DNA of 63,996 nucleotides, counting the filler, from Octopus bimaculoides (taxonomy: Eukaryota), in assembly GCF_001194135.2 (NCBI RefSeq). It is 7 parts of 7 records of this genome, joined end to end, with 100 filler letters (N's around TTAATTAATTAA, not from the genome) between each part and the next. Parts side by side here need not be neighbours in the genome. Positions count along the whole stretch, not along the records: positions 15,614 to 44,231 come from NC_068988.1; 6 more parts are not named here. One strand, given 5' to 3'. The notes beneath the pieces are model-generated. The model made no database searches, was not told the origin of the DNA, and saw only the letters and a program-made list of their open reading frames with translations. The first letter of the stretch is position 1. Each line of letters begins with the position of its first letter. Shown here piece after piece: positions 373-45,029 of the stretch. Position numbers and translations under genes: made by a program.

Positions 373-991
373 AGAGACAAATTGTGATGAATAGATAAAT
401 AAATAGGGAAAGAGGGAGAGTGAGAGAGAGACGGGGTAAGGGGGTGGAAGGGGCCTAATCCCTGAAGGCCATCCATCAGCCAACGGAGGGTCAGAGGTCA
501 AGGTATAATAACTGGCTGCCGAACAATGGTAACGTTTTTTTTTTTTTTTTTACCTTTGCATGTTTGGGTAAATATATCCGTCTCGTATTGTCAGCGTGGA
601 CGGATCTGATAGCACCGTTAGGGTATTTCGGAAGAAAACTAGTTGTACCACGCAATTAAAAAATACATTATACTCTGTTAATACAATGTCAAAACACACA
701 CAAACACACACATACACACACACAGTACGCACGTATGCATGGATACGGACACAAACATATAAACATACATACACGCACTCACTTAGACATAGTCAGTCTC
801 CTGTAAAGTAATTACACACATAAGAGTATAAGAAATTTGAGAGTATACTTACATACATGTGTATGTGTGTGTGTGTGCATGGACATACATATGTATACAT
901 ATCCAAATGTAGAAGTAGATATATATGTATATAATATATATAGGTTAATACCCAAATTAAATGTATGTATGTATATGTATGTATATGCATC

Positions 992-1025
<34 letters not shown>

Positions 1026-1049
1026 TACATATATGTATACACACCTAGT

Positions 1050-1119
1050 TGTGTATACATATATATATATGCATGTATGTGTATATATATTATACTAATA
1101 CATTTGTTTGTTTTCTAAA

Positions 1120-1152
<33 letters not shown>

Positions 1153-1219
1153 GAAAAAACGTATTGTTAACAAATGCCGGGATGCGTGGCATTCATCGTT
1201 ATTTATTTAATGCATTTTT

Positions 1220-1250
<31 letters not shown>

Positions 1251-1292
1251 NNNNNNNNNNNNNNNNNNNNNNNNNNNNNNNNTAAATAACGA

Positions 1293-1328
<36 letters not shown>

Positions 1329-1391
1329 AAAAATGCATTAAATAAATAACGATGAATGCCACGCATCCCGGCATTTGTTAACAATACGTTT

Positions 1392-1426
<35 letters not shown>

Positions 1427-1495
1427 TTTAGAAAACAAACAAATGTATTAGTATAATATATATACACATACATGCATATATATATATGTATACAC
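1050..1495. repeat. Near-perfect inverted duplication centred on an N-gap (likely assembly artefact)
   Basis: 1151-1230 (atgaaaaaacgtattgttaacaaatgccgggatgcgtggc...) is the exact reverse complement of ~1322-1400; symmetry extends to ~1050/1495; gap at 1251-1282 lies in the middle. Confidence 0.85.
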
Positions 1496-1541
1496 ACACA
1501 CTTACACATACATATATATGCATGTGAATATGTATATACGC

Positions 1542-1619
<78 letters not shown>

Positions 1620-2088
1620 ATACACACGTCTATATCTATATCTATCTATATATGTATTTATATCAAGAGAGAGAGAAACAGAGAGAGACTGAGAGAGAGA
1701 GAGAGAGAGACTGACAGAGAGAGAGAGAGACTGAGAGAGAAAGAGAGAGAGAGAGAGATAGATAGATAGAGAGAGAGAGAGCCAGAGACACTAGGATTGT
1801 ATACACACACATATATACATACATGCATACATTAGCTTTGTACGCGCATGCACATAAAGTAAATTACAGACATCACTCAGCGAAGCACATCAAATCGTCT
1901 TTCCCTCTTTCGTCCCGTTTATTAAGTTCCCCGCTGAGATATTATTATTTCGGCCATCACATGGAGTTGGCCATGACCAGCTCTGACCCCGTTGGTCTAC
2001 GATATTTATATCAACATAGCGGTAGGTTTCGTCGCAGCCATGTCTCTATAAAAACACACACACACACAGACATACACAGATACATACA

Positions 2089-2203
<115 letters not shown>

Positions 2204-2261
2204 AACATGATTTTGAAGCAATCATTAACCAAAGGATGTGAAAGGTCCGTGACCTACTGCT

Positions 2262-2551
2262 TACGGTGTTCTCAAGATCGCAAAGTCCTTGTTTCAATTC
2301 TCCTTCCGGCTGTGGCGTTGTGTTCTTGAGCAAAACACTTCCTTTCGCAGTGCTCCGGTCCTCCCAGCTGTAAACGAGCAACCCTGAAACAGACTGACCT
2401 ATCACTCATTGGGAGTGTTCTGATCTTGGTCACCTAGTTGCCATGGATACCGGGTAACCGGCGCTATGAGTTCAAACCCTGCAACAGAGCGACGGGTCAC
2501 TCATTGGAAATGTTCTGATTTTGGTCACCGAGTGGCCATGGATACCGGGTA
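2262..2551 (+). mobile_element. Degenerate tRNA-derived SINE with a locally duplicated ~55-bp tail segment
   Basis: gtgttcttgagcaaaacactt core shared with the SINE at 15004; cactcattgg...ggtcacc...gccatggataccgggta occurs at 2404-2457 and 2498-2551. Confidence 0.55.
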
Positions 2552-2561
2552 CAAAGAATAA

Positions 2562-2642
2562 GTCCTGGGGCACCTTGGGCAAGTGTCTTCTACTATAGCC
2601 TTGTGAGTGTATTAGGTAGACAAAAACTGAAAGAAGCCCGTC
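2562..2642 (+). mobile_element. 3' part of an octopus OR-type (CORE-like) SINE
   Basis: caccttgggcaagtgtcttctactatagcc...gtagacaaaaactgaaagaagcccgtc followed by (TA)n; same family recurs at least 8 times in the window. Confidence 0.8.
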
Positions 2643-2709
<67 letters not shown>

Positions 2710-3954
2710 NNNNNNNNNNNNNNNNNNNNNNNNNNNNNNNNNNNNNNNNNNNNNNNNNNNNNNNNNNNNNNNNNNNNNNNNNNNNNNNNNNNNNNNNNNN
2801 NNNNNNNNNNNNNNNNNNNNNNNNNNNNNNNNNNNNNNNNNNNNNNNNNNNNNNNNNNNNNNNNNNNNNNNNNNNNNNNNNNNNNNNNNNNNNNNNNNNN
2901 NNNNNNNNNNNNNNNNNNNNNNNNNNNNNNNNNNNNNNNNNNNNNNNNNNNNNNNNNNNNNNNNNNNNNNNNNNNNNNNNNNNNNNNNNNNNNNNNNNNN
3001 NNNNNNNNNNNNNNNNNNNNNNNNNNNNNNNNNNNNNNNNNNNNNNNNNNNNNNNNNNNNNNNNNNNNNNNNNNNNNNNNNNNNNNNNNNNNNNNNNNNN
3101 NNNNNNNNNNNNNNNNNNNNNNNNNNNNNNNNNNNNNNNNNNNNNNNNNNNNNNNNNNNNNNNNNNNNNNNNNNNNNNNNNNNNNNNNNNNNNNNNNNNN
3201 NNNNNNNNNNNNNNNNNNNNNNNNNNNNNNNNNNNNNNNNNNNNNNNNNNNNNNNNNNNNNNNNNNNNNNNNNNNNNNNNNNNNNNNNNNNNNNNNNNNN
3301 NNNNNNNNNNNNNNNNNNNNNNNNNNNNNNNNNNNNNNNNNNNNNNNNNNNNNNNNNNNNNNNNNNNNNNNNNNNNNNNNNNNNNNNNNNNNNNNNNNNN
3401 NNNNNNNNNNNNNNNNNNNNNNNNNNNNNNAATAAAAAACAAGCAAAAAGGCTGTACAGCCAGACGTGAAGTGTGTATGTATTGAACGCTGTGAAGCATG
3501 AACAGGAGGGGCAAAGAAGTACGTGCGAGCTTGGGGAGTCCAAGAACGAAAAGAAATAGCAGCCGGACACACGTGACCAAGGCTGTGTGAAGAGAAAGAG
3601 TAGCAGAGGGAAAAGAAGGGGAGGAAGTAGAATAAAAGTGAGTATCGAGAGGTAGAGAGAGAGAGAGAGAGAGATAGTAGTAGTTCGGTGAGAGGCGAAG
3701 GACGAGTAACAAGAGATAGAGAGAGAGAGAGAGAGATAGTAGTGACAGGTAGAGGCGAAGAACAGTAGAGGGAAGAATGAGAGGGGGAGATAGATATAGA
3801 GAGAGTCGCGTTAGAAAAATAGTTAAAACTTACTGTATAAAGGTTAACGCGAGCGTTCTGTCGTGATACAAACAATATATGAGTAAATGCATATATATGT
3901 ACATGTATGTACATANNNNNNNNNNNNNNNNNNNNNNNNNNNNNNNNNNNNNNN

Positions 3955-15613: not shown

Positions 15614-16830
15614 TGATATTGCTGCACCTCTTATGTGTCCATAGCTTGCACTGGGTACATCTTATAGAGTTACTACCTACTCCTTTTCTACATACTGAGC
15701 AGGGCCATCTACATGAAGGGGTTTGTGTTTTATCTACCTTCCTACTTATTAGGATTTTGGTTTTAGCTAGGTTGACTCTAAGGCCCTTCGATTCTAGTCC
15801 TTGCTTCCACACCTGAAACTTCTCCTCTAGTTCTGATAGTGACTCCGCAATTAGTGCAAGGTCATCAGCATAGAGGAGCTCCCAGGGGCAACCTGTCTTG
15901 AATTCCTCTGTGATCACCTGGAGGACTATGATAAATAGGAGGGGGCTGAACACGGAACCTTGGTGGACCCCTACCTCTACCCAGAATTCTTCACTGTACT
16001 CATTTCCAACCCTCACCTTACTGACAGCATCTCTGTACATGGCTCCCATAGCTCTCACTAACCATTCTTCTATCCCAAGTTTCCTCATTGACCACCAGAT
16101 AAGGGATCGGGGGACCTTGTCAAAGGCTTTCTCCATGTCAACGAAAGCCAGGTACAGAGGCTTATCCTTGGTTAGGTATTTCTCCTGCAGCTGTCTTACT
16201 AGAAATATGGCATCAGTGGTGCTTTTACCTGGCACGAACCCAAACTGCATCTCATCTAAATTGATTCGCTCCCTAATTAGTTGGGCTATGNNNNNNNNNN
16301 NNNNNNNNNNNNNNNNNNNNNNNNNNNNNNNNNNNNNNNNNNNNNNNNNNNNNNNNNNNNNNNNNNNNNNNNNNNNNNNNNNNNNNNNNNNNNNNNNNNN
16401 NNNNNNNNNNNNNNNNNNNNNNNNNNNNNNNNNNNNNNNNNNNNNNNNNNNNNNNNNNNNNNNNNNNNNNNNNNNNNNNNNNNNNNNNNNNNNNNNNNGT
16501 ATCACCTGGTTCGTAATACGGGTGACTAGGCTATAGGCAACACTGCCAGATATTTTGAGCATCTCTGCAGTGATTCCTGATGGGCCGGGGGCTTTCCCTG
16601 TCTTCATACTCTTAATTGCTTTATCTACCCTGGTACTGTCAACTCAGATAGCTGGTCCCTCTGTTGGGTCGACATACGGCAGACTCTCTTTCTCCCATTC
16701 ATTCTCTTTATTAAGCAATCTATCGTAGTGGCATCTCCAGACCTCTTTCTTTGCAGCCTCATTTAGTGCAAGCATACCATCATCCATGCGAATACATTTC
16801 TCTCCTACGACATCACTATTCTTGTAGGAG
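15614..16830 (-). pseudogene. RTE-clade LINE ORF2 fragment (RT core plus start of PHD-like finger), 5'-truncated
   Basis: KAPGPSG, QFGFVPGKSTTDAIF, FVDMEKAFD, GVHQGSV, LYADD, NLAKTK motifs followed by CSVC...CTQC...H..C. Confidence 0.95.
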
Positions 16831-18217: not shown

Positions 18218-19930
18218 ATCATCATCATCATCGTTTAACGTCCGCTTTCCATGCTAGCGGGAGTTGGACTATTTGACTGAGGACTGGTAAGCCAGAAGGC
18301 TGCACCAGGCTCCAATCTGATTTGGCAGAGTTTCTACAGCTGGATGCTCTTCCTAACGCCAACCACTCCGAGAGTGTAGTGGGTGCTTGTACGTGCCACC
18401 GGCATGAGGGCCTGTCACACACTACTGGCAATGGCCATGCTCAAAACGGTTTTTTTTACATGCCACCTACACTGCGCCAGTCATCGAGTATGGTTCAATT
18501 ACGATTTCACTTGCCCCAACAGGTCTTCGCAAGCAGAGTTTAGTGTCCAGTGAAGGAGAAGTTGACATGGGTGCCAATCGTCGGATTTGGTTTGATTTCG
18601 ATTTCAGATTTCAAATTCCAAATTTACTTGCCTCAACAGGTCTTCGCAAGCAGGGTTTTTAGTGTCCAATGAAGATACGAATTAGTGAGTTGGCTACACT
18701 TCTGGCAGAGATCACAGATTATGCTCTCACTTGCCTTGCCGGGTCTTCTCACGTACTGCATATTTCCAAAGGTCCGGGTCACTGGTCATTACCTCGGTGA
18801 GGCCTAAAGTTCGATGGTTGTGCTTCACCACCTCATCCCAGGTCTTCCTGGGTCTACCTCTTCCAGAGGTTCACTCAACTGCTAGGGTGTGACACTTTTT
18901 CACAGTTATCCTCATCCATTCTTGCCACATGTCCATACCAGCGCAATCGTCTCTCTTGCACACCACAACTGATGCTTCGTAAGTTCAACTTTTCTCTCAA
19001 GGTACTTACACTCTGTCGAGTATGCACACTGACATTACACATCCATCGGAGCATACTGTCTTCGTTTCTTGCAAGCTTACGCATGTCCTCAGCAGTCTCG
19101 GCCAATTGTTTCACTGCCATGTAGCATGGCTGTTCGTACACATGCATCATACAGTCTGCCTTTTACTCTGAGTGAGAGGCCCTTTGTCACCAGCAGAGGT
19201 AAGAGCTCTCTAAACTTTGCCCAGGCTATTCTTATTCTAGCAGCTACACTTTCAGTGCACCACTCCACCCACTACAAACTTGGTCACCTAGGTAGCGGAA
19301 GCTATCAACTACTTCTAGTTTTTCTCCCTGGAGTGTGGCAAAGGTTGTTTTCTGCACATTTTCAGTGTTTATTGCTCTTGAGCATCTGCCACATACAAAA
19401 ACTATCTTGCTAGTTAGCCTTCCTTCGATATTGCTGCACCTCTTATGTGTCCATAGCTTACACTGGATACATCTTATGGAGTTTCTACCTACGCCTTTTC
19501 TACAGATTGAGCAGGGCCATCTACCTGAAGGGGTTTGTGTTTTGTCTACCTTCCTACTTACTAGGACTTTGGTTTTAGCTAGGTTGACTCTAAGGCCCNN
19601 NNNNNNNNNNNNNNNNNNNNNNNNNNNNNNNNNNNNNNNNNNNNNNNNNNNNNNNNNNNNNNNNNNNNNNNNNNNNNNNNNNNNNNNNNNNNNNNNNNNN
19701 NNNNNNNNNNNNNNNNNNNNNNNNNNNNNNNNNNNNNNNNNNNNNNNNNNNNNNNNNNNNNNNNNNNNNNNNNNNNNNNNNNNNNNNNNNNNNNNNNNNN
19801 NNNNNNNNNNNNNNNNNNNNNNNNNNNNNNNNNNNNNNNNNNNNNNNNNNNNNNNNNNTAAATAGGAGGGGGCTGAGGACTGAACCTTGGTGGACCCCTA
19901 CCTCTACCCGGAATTCTTCCCTGTACTCGT
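18218..19930 (-). mobile_element. RTE-clade LINE 3' portion: RT C-terminus, intact C4HC3 finger, 3' UTR, (GAT)n tail
   Basis: VGVHQGSVLSPLLF at ~19860-19930; CSIC..CIQC..H..C..CGRC at 19382-19513; RLRWYGHVARM; GRPRKTW; ORF end near 18725; tail gcggacgttaaacgatgatgatg on the minus strand. Confidence 0.92.
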
Positions 19931-20059: not shown

Positions 20060-21350
20060 TATACACACGTCCAATACAATAGCTCTCACATACATTTTCG
20101 TCTTCAACAGGTATGTATCTATTCTATAATATAAATTGTTTTTCTATAAGCGTATAACAATTACTTATTCCATACTTCTTCACTTAGCTTTTATTTTCAC
20201 TTTTCTTAAATTGGATACGTCTGCTACTAATTCTTACATACAATTTTCCTGTTAATTCTTACAGCTTCATTTTCAGCTTCATTCCAAACGTCTATTTTTT
20301 CCTAGCCCCCATACTTACCGAAAACATCGATTAAAATTTTTTCTCATGCAATTCCCCTTTCTTTTGCCATTAACACAACCAGTTGCTCACACACCTTACA
20401 GTTTATCATTCAAACTACATAATATGCAGAATTGTTGCATTAATACAGTAGGGTGTTTTGAGGGAGACTTGGCTACTATTTCTACCAGGTCTACCTACCA
20501 TGTAGAGGTCTGAACTTATTTATCATTCACAGATTTGCATTTCAAACATTTAACATAATCTTTTCCATAAATCAACTATCGTAAAACTTTTCTACCACGA
20601 CCTCACATATTCTATATATGTGTATGTACCCTAAAAGATGTGATTAGACAGAGGTCCAATAGAATAGTTCTCATAAACAGACTACCTATGATTATACACA
20701 CATCCAATAGCTCTCACATACATTTTTGTCTTCAACAGGTATGTAGCTATTCTATAATATAAATTGTTTTCTATAAACGTATAACAATTACTTATTCCAT
20801 ACTTCTTAGCTTTTATCTTCATTTTCTTAAATTGGATACGTCTGCTATTAATTCTTACATACAATTTCCCTGTTAATTCTTATGGCTTCATTTTCTGTTA
20901 AAGCAATTCTTAACATCAACTTTTTAATGCCTCTTCTATTTTTTCCTAGCCCCCATACTTACCGAGAACATCAATTAAAATTTTTTCTCATGCAATTCCC
21001 CTTTCTTCTGCCATTAACACAACCAGTTGCTCATACACCTTACAGTTTATCATTCAAACTACATAATATGCAGAATTGTTGCATTAATACAGTAATGTGT
21101 TTTCAGGGAGATTTGGCTGCTATTTCTACCAGGTCTACCTACCATGTAGAGGGTGAACTTATTTTTCATACACAGATTTGCACTTCAAACATTTAACATA
21201 ATCTTTTCCATAAATCAACTATCGTAAAACTTTTCTACCATGACCTCACATTTTCTATGTATGTGTGTGTACCTTAAAAGACGTGATTAGACAGAGGTCC
21301 AATAGAATAGTTCTCAGAAACAGACTACCTACATATTCTTTCTTCACAAC
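20060..21350. repeat. Tandem duplication of a ~630-bp AT-rich unit, with partial further copies at 21440-21580 and 23190-23280
   Basis: ccaatagctctcacatacatt...caacaggtatgta... starts at ~20070 and ~20703; gattagacagaggtccaatagaatag at 20641, 21285 and 23193. Confidence 0.85.
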
Positions 21351-30693: not shown

Positions 30694-31279
30694 GCCAGTG
30701 ACTTGAAATTTACCAGAAAGGTCTACCTCTGGTGACAGCAATACAATACCTCATATTTCTTGTTGATGGATACTGTGGGTTGGTAGATGATATGCAGTTT
30801 TTTGCAGAGGTACACCTGGCAATTAGGGGTGCCAGGTGAATATGGTGGCACCCTGTTGATAATAGTCCACTTGATGCTGGGTGTTTCATCTCAGAGGTCA
30901 CAAAGTCTCTAGAGGAAGCGCAACAAGGAAGTGGAGTTCTCTCTGTCTCTGGATCTAAATGAATGTAAGTGCTGGGACAAAAGCAATGTTGTCAAGACCA
31001 CTGACTTATATACATCAACTTTCACCTTCAATGATATGTTATGACTGTTCCAAAGCCTGTGATAAAGCTTACCGAAAACGGAGCTAGCCTTCCCAATTCT
31101 GGACTCAATTTCTTTATCCATCTTAGCATCACTGGACACAATGAAACTAAGATAAGTGAAGGAGGAAACAGTTTTTAATGCTTTCCCATCAATGTATATA
31201 GTAGGGGCAACAGTGGGAAGATGGTCACAAATGGGCTGATGGACAAGCTCAGTTTTCTTGATGCTGATGATCAGACCAA
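30694..31279. repeat. Identical duplicate of 31475-32060 across an N-gap (probable unmerged overlap)
   Basis: 586-nt block appears identical at offset 781; the first copy ends exactly at the gap and the second starts exactly after it. Confidence 0.9.
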
Positions 31280-31699
31280 NNNNNNNNNNNNNNNNNNNNN
31301 NNNNNNNNNNNNNNNNNNNNNNNNNNNNNNNNNNNNNNNNNNNNNNNNNNNNNNNNNNNNNNNNNNNNNNNNNNNNNNNNNNNNNNNNNNNNNNNNNNNN
31401 NNNNNNNNNNNNNNNNNNNNNNNNNNNNNNNNNNNNNNNNNNNNNNNNNNNNNNNNNNNNNNNNNNNNNNNNNNGCCAGTGACTTGAAATTTACCAGAAA
31501 GGTCTACCTCTGGTGACAGCAATACAATACCTCATATTTCTTGTTGATGGATACTGTGGGTTGGTAGATGATATGCAGTTTTTTGCAGAGGTACACCTGG
31601 CAATTAGGGGTGCCAGGTGAATATGGTGGCACCCTGTTGATAATAGTCCACTTGATGCTGGGTGTTTCATCTCAGAGGTCACAAAGTCTCTAGAGGAAG

Positions 31700-32625
31700 C
31701 GCAACAAGGAAGTGGAGTTCTCTCTGTCTCTGGATCTAAATGAATGTAAGTGCTGGGACAAAAGCAATGTTGTCAAGACCACTGACTTATATACATCAAC
31801 TTTCACCTTCAATGATATGTTATGACTGTTCCAAAGCCTGTGATAAAGCTTACCGAAAACGGAGCTAGCCTTCCCAATTCTGGACTCAATTTCTTTATCC
31901 ATCTTAGCATCACTGGACACAATGAAACTAAGATAAGTGAAGGAGGAAACAGTTTTTAATGCTTTCCCATCAATGTATATAGTAGGGGCAACAGTGGGAA
32001 GATGGTCACAAATGGGCTGATGGACAAGCTCAGTTTTCTTGATGCTGATGATCAGACCAAAAGCCTTTGATGCATGTGGCAAATTATTTAGAACCCATTG
32101 CATGTCCTCAAGAGTGTATGCTACAAGTGCACAATCATCTGCAAAGAGCAAATCTTGAACTGTTTGCACCAAAATCTTAGTTTTTGCATTGAAGTGCTGT
32201 TGGTTGAACAAGCCACCACCAGTTCTGTACTCAAACTTTACTCCTTCTTTAACACCCTCAAATGCTGTTTCCAACATGACAGAGAAATACAAAACAAATA
32301 AGAGCAGTGCAAGAACGCTACCTTGTTTTGTCTCATTTGCAACTGCGAATGAATCAGACACTTCCCTGCTAGATCTGACAGAAGCAATCATCCTTTGATG
32401 GAAAGAAATGATGACATTGAGCATCTTTTCGGGAACACCTAGCTTTCCAAGGACAACCCAAGATATGGTGTCAAAAGATTTAGTTAGATCTAGAAAAGTG
32501 ACAAAAAGGTCTCGGTTGTGCTCACAAACCTTTTCCAGCAGCTGCCTTATGCTAAAAATCATATCCACTGAGCCTCTACCAATCTGAAATTCATACTGAG
32601 ATTCAGGCAACACTAAGCTGGCAGG
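31700..32625 (-). pseudogene. BovB-like RTE LINE reverse transcriptase fragment
   Basis: LPESQ..F..GRGSVDMIFSIRQLLEK, FLDLTKSFDT, KQGSVLA, LLFADDCAL, GLIISIKKTE, FTYLS, RIGKASSVFGKL; thumb follows directly with no zinc finger. Confidence 0.92.
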
Positions 32626-36069: not shown

Positions 36070-36786
36070 NNNNNNNNNNNNNNNNNNNNNNNNNNNNNNN
36101 NNNNNNNNNNNNNNNNNNNNNNNNNNNNNNNNNNNNNNNNNNNNNNNNNNNNNNNNNNNNNNNNNNNNNNNNNNNNNNNNNNNNNNNNNNNNNNNNNNNN
36201 NNNNNNNNNNNNNNNNNNNNNNNNNNNNNNNNNNNNNNNNNNNNNNNNNNNNNNNNNNNNNNNNNNNNNNNNNNNNNNNNNNNNNNNNNNNNNNNNNNNN
36301 NNNNNNNNNNNNNNNNNNNNNNNNNNNNNNNNNNNNNNNNNNNNNNNNNNNNNNNNNNNNNNNNNNNNNNNNNNNNNNNNNNNNNNNNNNNNNNNNNNNN
36401 NNNNNNNNNNNNNNNNNNNNNNNNNNNNNNNNNNNNNNNNNNNNNNNNNNNNNNNNNNNNNNNNNNNNNNNNNNNNNNNNNNNNNNNNNNNNNNNNNNNN
36501 NNNNNNNNNNNNNNNNNNNNNNNNNNNNNNNNNNNNNNNNNNNNNNNNNNNNNNNNNNNNNNNNNNNNNNNNNNNNNNNNNNNNNNNNNNNNNNNNNNNN
36601 NNNNNNNNNNNNNNNNNNNNNNNNNNNNNNNNNNNNNNNNNNNNNNNNNNNNNNNNNNNNNNNNNNNNNNNNNNNNNNNNNNNNNNNNNNNNNNNNNNNN
36701 NNNNNNNNNNNNNNNNNNNNNNNNNNNNNNNNNNNNNNNNNNNNNNNNNNNNNNNNNNNNNNNNNNNNNNNNNNNNNNNNNNNNNA

Positions 36787-39770
36787 GTGCTGTTAGAGCT
36801 CCACTGGTGCAGGTGCCAGTCATCAAGTATGGTTCAATTACGATTTCGATTCCAATTTTACTTGCCCCAACAGGTCTTCGCAAGCAGAGTTTAGTGTTCA
36901 ATGAAGGAGAAGTTGACATGGGTGCCAATCGTCGGATTTGGTTTGATTTCGATTTCAGATTTCAAATTCCAAATTTACTTGCCTCAACAGGTCTTCGCAA
37001 GCAGGGTTTTTAGTGTCCAATGAAGATACTTCTGGCAGAGGTCACAGATTATGCTCTCACTTGCCTTGCCAGGTCTTCTCACGTACTGCATATTGCCAAA
37101 GGTCCCGTTCACTGGTCATTGCCTCGGTGAGGCCTAATGTTCGAAGGTCGTGCTTCACCACCTCATCCCACGTCTTCCTGGGTCTACCTCTCCCACAGAT
37201 TCCATCAGCTGCTAGGCTGTGGCACTTTTTCACACACCTATCCTCAACCATTCTTGCCACATGTCCATACCAGCGCAATCGACTCTCTTGCACGCCACAA
37301 CTGATGCTTCTATGGTCCAACTTTTCTCTCAAGGTACTTACACTCTGTCGAGTATGCACACTGGCATTACACATTCATCAGAGCATACTGTCTTCGTTTC
37401 TTGCGAGCTTACGCATGTCCTGAGCAGTCACGGCCCATGTTTCACTGCCATGTAGCATGGCTGTTCGTACACATGCATCATACAGTCTGCATTTTACTCT
37501 GAGTGAGAGGCCCTTTGTCACCAGCAGAAGTAAGAGCTCTCTAAACTTTGCCCAGGCTATTCTTATTCTAGCAGCTACACTTTCAGTGCACCCTCCCCCA
37601 CTACAAACTTGGTCACCTAGGTAGCGGAAGCTATCAACTACTTCTAGTTTTTCTCCCTGGAATGTGGCAAAGGTTGTTTTCTGCATATTTTCAGTGTTTA
37701 TTGCCCCTGAGCATCTGCCACATACAAAAACTATCTTGCTAGTTAGCCTTCCTTTGATACTGCTGCACCTCTCATGTGTCCATAGCTTACACTGGGTACA
37801 TCTTATGGAGTTTTTACCTTCGCCTTTTCTACAGATCGAGTGGGTCCATGTACCTGAAGGGGTTTGTGTTTTGTCTACCTTCCTACTTATTAGGACTTTG
37901 GTTTTAGCTAGGTTGACTCTAAGGCCCTTCGATTCTATTCCTTGCTTCCACACCTGAAACTTCTCCTCTAGTTCTGATAGTGACTCAGGAATTAGGGCAA
38001 GGTCATCAGCGTAGAGGAGCTCCCAGGGTCATCCTGTCTTGAATTCCTGTGTTATTGCTTGAAGGACTATGATAAATAGGAAGGGACTGAGGACTGAACC
38101 TTGGTGGACCCCTACTTCTACCCGGAATTCTTCACTACACTCGTTGCCAACCCTCACCTTACTAACGGCGTCTCTGTACATGGCTTGCACAGCTCTCACT
38201 AACCACTCCTCTATCCCTAGTTTCTTCATTGTCCACCAGATAAGGGATCGGGGGACCCTGTCACAGGCTTTCTCCATGTCAACGAAAGCCAGGTACAGAG
38301 GTTTATCTTTGGCTAGGTATTTCTCCTGCAGCTGTCTTACCAGAAATATAGCATCAGTGGTGCTTTTCCCTGGAACAAACCCAAACTGCATCTCATCTAA
38401 ACTGACTCTCTCCCTAATTTGTTGGGCTATGACCCTCTCGGTGACCTTCATTACCTGGTCCAACATCTTGATACCTCTGTAATTGTTTGTGTCTAAATCG
38501 TCACCTTTACCTTTGTAGCAGCTGACTATGGTGCTGCTACACCAGCTATTGGATATGACTCCTTCGTGTATCACCTGATTAACTATATGGGTGACTAGGC
38601 TATAGCTGACATTGCCAGATATTTTGTGCATCTCTGCAGTGATTCCTGATGGGGCAGGGGCTTTCCCTGTCTTCATACTCTTGATCGATCTATCTACCAA
38701 GGTACTATCAATTAGGATAGCTTGTCCCTCTGTTGGGTCGACATGCGGCAGACTCTCTTCCTCCCATTCATTCTCTTTATTAAGCAGCCTCATTTAGTAC
38801 ACATTTCTCTCCTACGACATCACGATTCTCTCTCACACACTGTCTTGCAACATGAAATACATCAAGTCTTTGCTCTTCACGGCGCAGAACATTGGCAAAT
38901 TTTTCTTATCTGCTTCCCCTCTGGCTAAGTAAACCTGTCTCCTAGCTTCCCTTCTGGCAGTCTGATACAATAGCCTGCTGCTTCCGTTCTTCCAGTCCTT
39001 CCAAGCCTGTTTCTTTTGTCTAATAGCCCTGTCAGTCACATTGTTCCACCACCACGATACTTTGGGTCGAGAGGGGACTTTGCACCAGCCACAGATGTGG
39101 TCAATGGCTCTCAGCAGGTTGTCCTGTAGGAACCTCCAATTGTCTTCCACATTGTGTGATGCTATATCCCCTTTTATTTCATCAAATGCTTCGAGTAAGA
39201 CATTTCTAACTCTTTGTCCATTTGTAGGACCTTTAAGCTTCCAGACTCCAAGCTGGTCTACTTCTGGGCATCCATTTAGCCTTGATCCCAAAGTCGCTAA
39301 CTACTAATCTGTGTTGAGGGGTACAATTCTTCGCCTGGGAAGCATTTGCCATTTATAAGCCATCCTCTTTCCCTATTTCTGGCGAGGATGTAGTCAATTT
39401 GGCTAGTGTGTCTGTCGGAACGGTAGGTGAATAGGTGACAGGCAGGCTTCTTGAAGTTGGTATTGCAAACCATAAAATCGTTTCCATCACAGAACTCCAG
39501 CAGTCAGGTTCCCTCCTCATTGTGGGAACCGAAGCCATAGCCTCCATGTATGCCATGGAAGCCCCCTGCTTGTTGTCCAACATGACCATTGAAATCACCA
39601 GCCACAAAGAGACGGTCCCTGTCATTCGTCAATGCGGTAGTTTGCAAGAGGGTGTCATAGAATTGGTCTTATTGGTCTTTCTGCCCATCCGGTAGCCCCG
39701 GTTGAGGGGCATAGACCAAGATGACGGTAGCTAACCTATGGTGAAGCACTAGTCTAATCTTAAGTACTCT
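36787..39770 (-). mobile_element. Longest RTE-clade LINE copy: APE endonuclease C-half, linker, RT, PHD-like insert, thumb, part of 3' UTR; stops and frameshifts
   Basis: VYAPQ, VAGDFNGHVG, NTNFKK, QIDYILA (APE); NYRGIKML, QFGFVPGKS, FVDMEKA, HQGSVLSP, LYADD; SIC..CTQC..H..C..CGRC; FRYLG; RLRWYGHVARM. Confidence 0.95.
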
Positions 39771-41499: not shown

Positions 41500-42497
41500 A
41501 ACGGAGCATACTGGCTTCATTCCTTGCGAGCTTACGTATGTCATCAGCAGTTACAGCCCATGTTTCACTGCCATGTAGCATGGCTGTTCGTACACATGCG
41601 TCATACAGTCTGCCTTTTACTCTGAGTGAGAGTCCCTTTGTCGCCAGGAGGGGTAAGAGCTCTCTAAACTTTGCCCAGGCTATTCCTATTCTAGCAGCTA
41701 CACTTTCAGCGCACCCACCCCCACTACTAACTTGGTCGCCCAGATAGCGGAAGCTATCGACTACCTCTAGTTTTTCACCCTGGAATGAGATAGAAGTTGT
41801 TTCCTGTTTGTTTACAGTCTTTATTGCACCTGAACATCTGCCACAAACAAAAACTAACTTGCTAGTATATATATATACATATAATATATATGTGTATATA
41901 TTTATATCTTTCAGTATTTATATATGTATGTATGTATATATATGTATATATGTATTCATAGATGTGTGTATGTATATATATATATCTATATATCATCCCA
42001 GGTTTTCCTGGGTCTACCTCTTCCACAGGTACCCTCAACTGCTAGGCTGTGGCACTTTTACACACAGCTATCCTCATCCATTCTCACCAAGTGACCATAC
42101 CAGCGCAATCGTCTCTCTTGCACACCACAACTGATGCTTCTATGGGCCAACTTTTCTATCAAGGTACTTACACTCTGTCGAGTATGCACACTGACATTAC
42201 ACATCCATCGGAGCCTACTGGCTTCATTCTTTGCAAGCCTATGCATATCCTCAGCAGTCATGGCCTATGTTTCACTGCCATGTAGCATAGCTGTTTGTAC
42301 ACATGCGTCATAAAGTCTGCCTTTTACTCTGAGCGAAAGGCCCTTTGTCACCAGCAGAGGTAATTGCTCTCTGAACTTTCCCCTGACTATTCTTATTCTA
42401 GCAGCTACACTTTCAGTGCACCCTCCCCCGCTAGGTAACGGAAGCTATCAACTACTACTAGTTTTTCTCCTTGGAATGTGGCAGAAGTTGTTCTCTG
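41500..42497 (-). mobile_element. Two overlapping RTE LINE thumb-region fragments separated by (TA)-rich simple sequence
   Basis: LHGSETWAVTA, KLVFVCGRCSG, EVVDSFRYLG, RLRWYGHLVRM; the same segment is present twice from different copies. Confidence 0.85.
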
Positions 42498-42502
42498 CAT
42501 AT

Positions 42503-42536
<34 letters not shown>

Positions 42537-43940: not shown

Positions 43941-44100
43941 CATCATCATCATCATCATCGTTTAACGTCCGCTTTCCATGCTAGCATGGGTTGGACGATT
44001 TGACTGAGGACTGGTGAAACCGGATGGCAACACCAGGCTCCAGTCTAATTTGGCAGAGTTTCTACAGCTGGATGCCCTTCCTAACGCCAACCACTCAGAG
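43941..44100 (-). mobile_element. RTE 3'-UTR-only copy with (GAT)n tail
   Basis: catcatcatcgtttaacgtccgctttccatgctagcatgggttggacg...gccaaccactcagagag, near-identical to 18218-18375. Confidence 0.88.
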
Positions 44101-44101
44101 A

Positions 44102-44142
<41 letters not shown>

Positions 44143-45029
44143 TAGACATTGGGAGAGGCATTATGCCAGTAATAAACACACGCACTGGTTCAGTCCTTTA
44201 TTAATTTAATTTATATAGTTTTTTGTTAAATNNNNNNNNNNNNNNNNNNNNNNNNNNNNNNNNNNNNNNNNNNNNTTAATTAATTAANNNNNNNNNNNNN
44301 NNNNNNNNNNNNNNNNNNNNNNNNNNNNNNNTATATTAAAAAAAAGAAAAAAAATGTATTTCCAATAATTTGGTTGCCAAGACACGTATGTCGCAATAGC
44401 TGATTTCATCTAACTGTAAAAGAGGTATCATAAACTAGGTTATATTATAAATAAAAATTTAGCTTAGTTTTTTTTTTTTAATAACAAAAATATGAGCCAA
44501 AATGTCTGACTATTTTCTAAAAATGCGTCTACATTAACATGGCCGACAAACTACTTAAATCTCGTTGGCCCAGTCTGCATGGTTGTAAAAGGGTATGATG
44601 AAGTAGGTTAGCGAAGTAAAACAGTATTTTAGAATAAAAACGTCAATAACTACCGAGACTAAAAGTAAATAAAAAGAAAAAAAGAAACGTATTTAGAAGG
44701 AAGACTACATACATTTGTTTGCATTGTAAAAAATATTCCTTAAACTCTATTCTGTAACCTAAGGATATATTAAAAGGGCGCATTGTTACAGGGAAGATAA
44801 CCGCCCCCTGCACACCGAACTAGATCACTATACTAGTATAGTTTCGCTTAAAATTTAAGCTCATTACTAATGACCATTCCATCGCTGGATGGTTTGGCTA
44901 AATCCCGACTGTCAATATATAGTATGAATTATCGTCATATATGGTATGAATTATATTTGACTGTATATATATATACTGTTTGTATATTGGCGTATATGAA
45001 TATATATATATATATATATGGGAGAATTT

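Follow-up and report, generated by a model that had tools for sequence, protein, structure and literature searches.

A PHD-type zinc finger between motifs 6 and 7 of the reverse transcriptase of an RTE-like LINE in Octopus bimaculoides

We report on a long interspersed nuclear element (LINE) whose reverse transcriptase (RT) carries a PHD-type C4HC3 zinc finger between motifs 6 and 7 of the palm. It was found in a stretch of Octopus bimaculoides DNA of 63,996 nucleotides, joined from seven parts of assembly GCF_001194135.2 and referred to below as the window. All copies discussed here lie in the piece at positions 15614-44231 (NC_068988.1), a gap-ridden and microsatellite-rich scaffold with nine runs of N. 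Motif scans and alignments identified one LINE family with six copies in these 28.6 kb, every copy on the minus strand. The finger-in-RT architecture is a solid and testable observation and overturns nothing. The finger of copy B with its flanking RT motifs, and the copies themselves, are as follows.

19382..19513, minus strand: PHD-type C4HC3 zinc finger of copy B (translation, Pfam PHD, AlphaFold2 and Foldseek; 8 of 8 ligands intact)
19568..19585, minus strand: RT motif 6/D of copy B (NLAKTK), directly upstream of the insert, placed through the alignment of the homologue P0093 with L1 ORF2p
19289..19306, minus strand: RT motif 7/E of copy B (DSFRYL of DSFRYLG, the primer-grip strand), downstream of the insert
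15614..16790, minus strand: copy A, RT and the first 29 codons of the finger (RVT_1 92.5 bits; PHD 18.6 bits on the truncated finger)
18223..19930, minus strand: copy B of the PHD-bearing LINE, 5'-truncated in RT motif 4, with an N gap at 19599-19858
36786..39770, minus strand: copy C, the most complete (PHD 25 bits, RVT_1 71 bits)
41500..41857, minus strand: copy D, 5'-truncated within the finger, with LVFVCGRC at 41834-41854
about 41990..42536, minus strand: copy E, starting just downstream of the finger, after an N gap and a TA repeat
43950..44231, minus strand: sixth copy, 3' end only, with GGACGTTAAAC and (GAT)n; the piece edge truncates it

The finger and its place in the reverse transcriptase

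The minus strand of 19382-19513 translates to CSICRKGVGRNSIRCIQCKLWTHKRCSNIEGRLTSKIVFVCGRC, with GLRVNLAKTKVLVSRKVDKTQTPSGRWP upstream and SRAINTENVQKTTFATLQGEKLEVVDSFRYLGDQV downstream. The ligand pattern of copy B is C-x2-C-x10-C-x2-C-x4-H-x2-C-x14-C-x2-C (spacing 2-10-2-4-2-14-2), and both copy B and its homologues agree with the canonical PHD pattern C-x2-C-x(9-21)-C-x(2-4)-C-x(4-5)-H-x2-C-x(12-46)-C-x2-C. Pfam model PF00628 (PHD; gathering cut-off 24 bits) scored 26.5-27.9 bits on the copy B finger (E = 2.4e-6 to 6.5e-6). Scores above the cut-off were also obtained for copy C (25.0 bits) and the homologous proteins P0093 (27.0), P0016 (30.1) and P0064 (24.7), while P0010 (21.0) and P0007 (21.9) fell just under it; all 44 family fingers tested matched the PHD model at E ≤ 0.01 (best E = 6e-9). 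Readings of the finger as a C1 domain or a RING were rejected, their Pfam scores being all sub-threshold and the ligand pattern not fitting.

A profile of the family fingers searched against all PDB sequences returned PHD fingers only, with Pygopus 1 and 2 best (E = 1.5e-7), followed by PHF13, PHF23, ALFIN-like, KDM5B PHD3, PHF2, BPTF, TAF3, MLL1 PHD3 and DIDO. The 109-residue segment of copy B (19271-19597) was modelled with AlphaFold2 (AF2) together with 80 homologues, giving a mean predicted local distance difference test score (pLDDT) of 83.6 and values of 86-95 within the finger. The top 50 Foldseek matches of this model in the PDB were nearly all PHD fingers (ARID5, BPTF, ING5, TAF3, BHC80, BAZ2B), with probabilities up to 0.99, root-mean-square deviations of 2.2-3.0 Å over about 50 columns and target-normalised template modelling scores of 0.5-0.66; the E-values were weak (0.06-0.3), as expected since the domain is only 45 residues long. 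Moreover, an aromatic residue (F or Y) stands two residues ahead of ligand C7 in 108 of 108 sequences. By Pfam, PDB profile and predicted fold the finger is a genuine PHD-fold zinc module, predicted to adopt the PHD cross-brace treble-clef fold. Its C4HC3 spacing and PHD-type identity had been proposed in a preliminary description of the window, which had staked its claim on a cross-brace fold and on purifying selection at the eight ligands; the reverse complement translates exactly as described there, the AF2 and Foldseek results point to the predicted fold, and the ligands are indeed invariant (see below). In a precomputed Pfam table, PF27108 (PHD_Pygo) has a weak match on the protein of the homologous contig L001 and on several other homologues. 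This match and the top PDB rank of Pygopus suggest a possible origin of the finger from a host PHD of the Pygopus type.

The location was fixed by aligning P0093 with human L1 ORF2p, where KVNIAKTKVM stands opposite KINVQKSQAF, that is RT motif 6/D. The N, K and K of motif 6 are invariant in 81 sequences, and the F, Y, L, G and D of motif 7 in alignments of 54 and 81 sequences. With NLAKTK as motif 6 and FRYLG as motif 7, the place of the finger in the palm is thus after motif 6 and before motif 7. The preliminary description had correctly placed it inside the RT of a LINE with APE endonuclease, RT and RTE-type features, and had erred in putting it between motif 7 and the thumb.

Spacer length sets the finger-bearing lineage apart. 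The distance from motif 6 to motif 7 is 87-95 amino acids (median 90) in this lineage, with the finger in 120 of 120 proteins. A second RTE-like RT in the window (31690-32613, minus strand) passes from KKTE to FTYLS in 29 residues, in keeping with the short spacer already noticed there, and among relatives of this finger-less family a C4HC3 finger or a PHD Pfam match occurs in 0 of 113 (spacer 25-43 amino acids, median 29). The 90- versus 29-residue spacer and the lack of fingers in these 113 relatives identify an insertion of about 60 residues that is specific to one lineage, and the spacer length offers a simple diagnostic of the finger-bearing RTE lineage.

Three further observations were made on the second RT family. 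Its best database match is from Octopus vulgaris (67% identity), and O. bimaculoides fragments were matched as well, in agreement with a cephalopod source of the window. Its relatives are mostly RT-only gene calls some 500 amino acids long, and "BovB-like" is the label given to it in the preliminary description. Finally, 30694-30993 and 31475-31774 are 100% identical over 300 nt with starts 781 nt apart, the second stretch beginning right after the N gap at 31280-31474 and the first ending about 290 nt before it; the assembly has probably duplicated sequence at this scaffold gap, so that the 3' part of the finger-less RT copy occurs twice.

Copies, element class and distribution

The finger of copy A occupies 15614-15701 and ends at the piece edge after ...KRCSNI; an N gap (16291-16498) lies within this copy. 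Copy B shifts frame past motif 7 and ends 3' in GGACGTTAAAC followed by (GAT)n. Copy C comprises the C-terminal part of the APE endonuclease, the RT, the finger, the thumb, the RTE-type C-terminal tail and the 3' untranslated region (UTR), with several stops and frameshifts and with N gaps cutting both ends. Its finger (37711-37842) has lost ligand C1 through two substitutions (TGC to CAC at 37840-37842) and reads THSIC; together with the stop codons this loss marks copy C as dead. Copy D keeps an open frame across motif 7 and the thumb as far as an N gap. Copy E reaches GRGRPRKTWD, where a TA microsatellite replaces the remainder, and the 3' end of the sixth copy has an exact 21-nt match to that of copy B (0 expected by chance).

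Copies A, B and C are 88-97% identical in pairs and differ in their 5' truncation points, and are therefore separate insertions, fairly young and already decaying. The finger recurs, whole or in part, in A, B, C and D, as the preliminary description had it. The clustering of six copies on one strand could stem from preferred insertion, for example into microsatellites or into the element itself, or from an assembly effect. We also note that a TA microsatellite separates copy E from the 5'-truncated copy D, which comes next downstream, and that within the 3' UTR of copies B (18500-18700) and C (36845-37050), both on the minus strand, a direct repeat of about 110 nt occurs (CATTGGACACTAAA..CTGCTTGCGAAGACCTGTTG.GGCAAGT..).

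Full-length homologues are single proteins of 960-1010 amino acids on contigs of 3.0-4.0 kb, and Exo_endo_phos, RVT_1 and PHD occur together in proteins of about 1000 amino acids (Exo_endo_phos and RVT_1 in P0010 and P0093). For example, L001 is a 3644-bp contig with one open reading frame (ORF; 542-3547), no other notable ORF, a 541-nt leader and a 3' UTR of less than 100 nt, ending in GACGTTAAATCGAA and (TA)n. The element unit is hence about 3.5 kb, with APE endonuclease, RT and RTE-type tail, and the window copies themselves are without 5' ends. Two traits of the RTE group were found: a single APE+RT ORF of about 1000 codons in about 3.2-3.6 kb without a sizeable ORF1, seen in the homologues, and a short tandem repeat at the 3' end instead of poly(A), namely (GAT)n in copy B and the sixth copy and (TA)n in L001. 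The C-terminal tail RLRWYGHVxRM ... GRGRPRKTW ... DR..W is common to the PHD-bearing and the finger-less families, and also to BovB. The RT core is 30% identical to the second RTE-like RT in the window (E = 3e-21) and about 17% identical to L1 ORF2p, and the full-length AF2 model (pLDDT 85, predicted template modelling score 0.68) matches the L1 ORF2p and R2 complexes engaged in target-primed reverse transcription (TPRT). The element fits an RTE-group LINE, a class assigned by architecture, tail and RT identity and not by RT phylogeny.

The 3' terminus GGACGTTAAAC (18223-18243 and 43950-43970, minus strand) is nearly the same as that of L001 (3547-3570, GACGTTAAATCGAA), while the proteins are only about 46% identical. 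To judge from these sequences, it seems to be a conserved motif for recognition of the 3' end, as in a "stringent" LINE, and may be common to partner SINEs (short interspersed nuclear elements).

The stitched RT-finger-tail of copy C retrieved 1701 proteins at E ≤ 1e-10, of which the best 120 (45-72% identical to the query) were analysed. Named hosts among these are Hydractinia (a hydrozoan), Mercenaria (a clam), two Branchiostoma species (amphioxus) and Neoarius (a catfish), and many of the remainder come from marine metagenome contigs or are proteins of "bacterial" metagenome-assembled genomes (MAGs). All 120 have a C4HC3 finger between K[TS]K and xYLG, 108 of them with identical spacing. 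None of the eight zinc ligands varies in alignments of 54 and 81 sequences, and in this they resemble the RT's catalytic Asp residues. To judge selection on the active lineage, we relied on such cross-family conservation and not on dN/dS of the decayed window copies, which number only three to four, are frameshifted and differ by changes that include the C1 loss in copy C. Column entropy averages 1.38 bits for the finger, 1.36 for motif 7 with the thumb and 1.53 for the endonuclease; the C-terminal tail has 1.92, and the protein varies most in the two linkers on either side of the finger (2.30 and 2.73 bits). A conserved finger between such variable linkers marks a domain that folds on its own and is held by strong purifying selection. 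The finger is thus kept under selection that equals that on the thumb and exceeds that on the endonuclease, and the element therefore needs it to propagate.

In an exhaustive search of 1.84 billion cluster representatives, the 109-residue segment matched 373 clusters (50% identity) at E ≤ 1e-10. No transposable-element names were found among the cluster members of the homologues, many of which are metagenome contigs or MAG proteins mis-assigned to bacteria. Two candidate relatives, P0295 and P0297, were rejected as repetitive proteins whose scores are summed weak repeats. The ORF of the window itself was looked up in public assemblies and has no record there. The insert is not peculiar to these octopus copies: judged by its presence in the best 120 homologues, it is universal in a large metazoan LINE lineage and an ancient feature that defines it, from Cnidaria to vertebrates.

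Some public annotation of these elements is misleading, as in the database hits P0016, P0109, P0117 and P0150. P0016 is a catfish gene model that fuses the LINE to slc22a21 (isoform X2). Moreover, several LINE copies are deposited as proteins of bacterial MAGs, assigned to Thiodiazotropha from a lucinid clam, Herbaspirillum and Burkholderiales; these are almost certainly host DNA contamination.

Elsewhere in the scaffold, 20291-20688 and 20935-21331 form a local direct repeat (94-96% identical, spacing 644 nt).

What the finger may do

In R2 elements an RT loop termed motif 6a wedges into and distorts the upstream target DNA during TPRT, as seen by cryo-electron microscopy (cryo-EM; PMC11204384, PMC12180492). 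The finger likewise is an insertion between RT motifs 6 and 7 and should sit where R2 motif 6a lies, an equivalence drawn by motif numbering and name and not by residue alignment. Its net charge averages +6 (range +1 to +11; copy B +9). The 6a-like position and the strongly basic surface lead us to favour a nucleic-acid grip, and we tentatively propose that the finger engages target DNA or another nucleic acid during TPRT, which we regard as quite possible. The finger would act at the integration step, its basic surface most likely holding on to the DNA of target or primer, or to the RNA:DNA duplex, beside the primer grip, and a conserved aromatic groove (aromatic-Pro ahead of C1, Trp two residues ahead of the His) might provide the specific contact. 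The domain identity of the finger, its position, its generality and the selection on it were established above, and to these we add a mechanism that we infer.

Several points weigh against a nucleic-acid grip. The closest solved relatives of the finger are histone-tail readers and not DNA binders, and the residues of the reader pocket are its best conserved non-ligand positions, which could mean a peptide ligand or could reflect packing of this face on the RT body. The linkers that flank the finger have pLDDT values of 63-75 in the full-length AF2 model, leaving its predicted orientation relative to the nucleic-acid cleft uncertain. Furthermore, the 6a equivalence rests on motif naming and not on superposition.

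The pocket residues bring us to the proposal, made in the preliminary description, that the finger is a chromatin reader, binding a methylated histone tail (of the H3K4me2/3 type) on the target nucleosome and so steering or licensing integration. We consider this unlikely, though it has to be weighed seriously, as the best sequence matches listed above (Pygo1/2, PHF13, PHF23, ALFIN, KDM5B PHD3, PHF2, BPTF, TAF3, MLL1 PHD3, DIDO) make up the H3K4me-reader subclass, and the weak PF27108 match points the same way. With the H3K4me2 complex of hPygo1 as reference (Fiedler 2008, PMC2726290), the hydrophobic pocket residues are retained in the LINE finger:

hPygo1 Y341: Y, F or W in the LINE finger, 96 of 108
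hPygo1 V350: V in the LINE finger, 98 of 108
hPygo1 A356: S or A in the LINE finger, 106 of 108
hPygo1 I357: I in the LINE finger, 105 of 108
hPygo1 W366: W in the LINE finger, 107 of 108

The cage of the reader subclass is accordingly there, as a Trp two residues before the His (107 of 108) and a second aromatic next to C1 (96 of 108). In Pygo, W366 is essential for H3K4me binding and mutation of E360 abolishes it (PMC2726290). The acidic anchors that hold H3 A1 and R2 in this subclass, one after C3 and one in an acidic lip, are not found in the LINE finger: the residue after C3, equivalent to Pygo E360, is S, T, N, G or Q and acidic in 0 of 108 sequences, and the acidic lip loop with D352 is deleted. 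BPTF and ING2 have an Asp at the position after C3, with the same role as Pygo E360. Moreover, the mean charge of +6 stands against about -6 for the Pygo1 PHD (counted from sequence), so that the finger would be a poor partner for the H3 tail, both being strongly basic. The hydrophobic half of the proposed H3K4me pocket is thus kept and its acidic half is not, and canonical reading of the H3 tail is possible and less likely than nucleic-acid engagement. In its fullest form, the proposal is a working H3K4me-type reader in the RT palm, at the site named 6a, which couples the first reverse-transcription step to the chromatin state of the target nucleosome throughout the lineage; this we regard as improbable. 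In that case the module, a methyl-lysine reader, might have been captured from a Pygopus-like host gene in an early animal.

It is about as doubtful that the finger is only a structural or docking module, which stabilises the palm or recruits a host protein (e.g. a replication or repair factor) and touches neither nucleic acid nor histone. Fingers of the PHD fold and treble-clef type often mediate protein-protein contacts; the back face of the Pygo PHD binds BCL9 HD1 (PMC2726290), and the conserved non-ligand surface fits a fixed protein interface as well as a ligand pocket. The linkers, long, variable (2.3-2.7 bits) and of lower pLDDT, suggest a domain that is tethered and independent and not a brace built into the palm; the RTs of other LINEs fold with no module of this kind, and the mean charge of +6 is left unexplained. 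Finally, that the finger is a passenger or an artefact (a host exon that a few copies picked up, chimerism in a gene model or an assembly error) has next to no probability, in spite of chimeric database models such as P0016 and of the gap-ridden scaffold. All of the best 120 homologues, which span at least four animal phyla, have it in frame at the same RT position, and its ligands do not vary; it occurs whole or in part in four separate window copies, and the 45-72% identity spread of the homologues excludes a single contaminating source sequence.

To our knowledge, little is understood of how APE-type LINEs, past the short nick site of the endonuclease, select their target and keep hold of it, and we know of no solved structure of an RTE-type element. 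A conserved accessory domain in the palm, beside the primer grip, gives a concrete and mutable handle on target engagement. Were the finger to grip DNA, the 6a site would be a general platform elaborated independently by different LINE groups, which is relevant to engineering retrotransposon proteins for gene insertion. Were it to read chromatin, LINE integration would be tied to epigenetic state in a lineage that extends from Cnidaria to vertebrates, and the polymerase of this element would be the first of any LINE to contain a chromatin reader.

Comparison with known systems

PHD fingers of LINEs have been described from CR1/L2 elements, in ORF1 or at the 5' end of either ORF2 or a single ORF (Metcalfe & Casane 2014, PMC4120745), which agrees with the earlier remark that they usually reside in CR1/L2 ORF1. 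These elements of the Jockey superfamily likewise have a C4HC3 PHD in a non-LTR retrotransposon, thought to have been gained through domain shuffling; theirs is in ORF1 or at the 5' end, whereas here the finger is in the catalytic palm of the RT and in an RTE-like superfamily. In the full-text literature, with Repbase notes outside the search, we found only these CR1/L2 PHDs and no description of a PHD finger inside the RT of an RTE or of any other LINE. The architecture is already visible as RVT_1 + PHD in the precomputed Pfam annotation of public proteins. An RTE element of the octopus brain, RTE-2_OV, is reported to have a "C2H2 zinc finger", called relatively rare in RTE elements (PMC9115989).

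The Pygopus PHD (PDB 2vpe, 2vp7), an H3K4me2/3 reader, is the best solved relative of the finger and has the same hydrophobic K4me pocket and the common motif aromatic-P-C-G-(V/I)-C ... (S/A)-I-x-C ... C-x-K-W-(V/F)-H-(K/R)-x-C-(S/T)-G. The LINE finger differs in its basic charge and in being without the acidic D352 loop and E360, is without a known partner of the BCL9 type, and is an internal domain of a polymerase. BovB and other RTE-type LINEs, including the second family in the window, have the RTE-type C-terminal tail (LRW-GH--RM ... GRP ... W) and, in that family, the 30% identical RT core, but not the finger or the long spacer of the PHD-bearing lineage.

In R2 elements (BoMo, TaGu and PlaMe, by cryo-EM), motif 6a is also an RT-internal insertion after motif 6, in the same place as judged by name; it is a short loop, in contrast to the zinc-binding domain seen here. 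R2 has in addition a restriction-like endonuclease and an N-terminal ZnF/Myb, whereas in the present element the endonuclease is of the APE type and further DNA-binding domains are absent. Chromoviral (Ty3/gypsy) integrases, with their chromodomain, set a precedent for a chromatin-reader domain in an integration enzyme of a retroelement. The chromodomain belongs to another class of elements, is of another fold and is situated at the C-terminus of an integrase, and it becomes relevant only if the finger does read histones.

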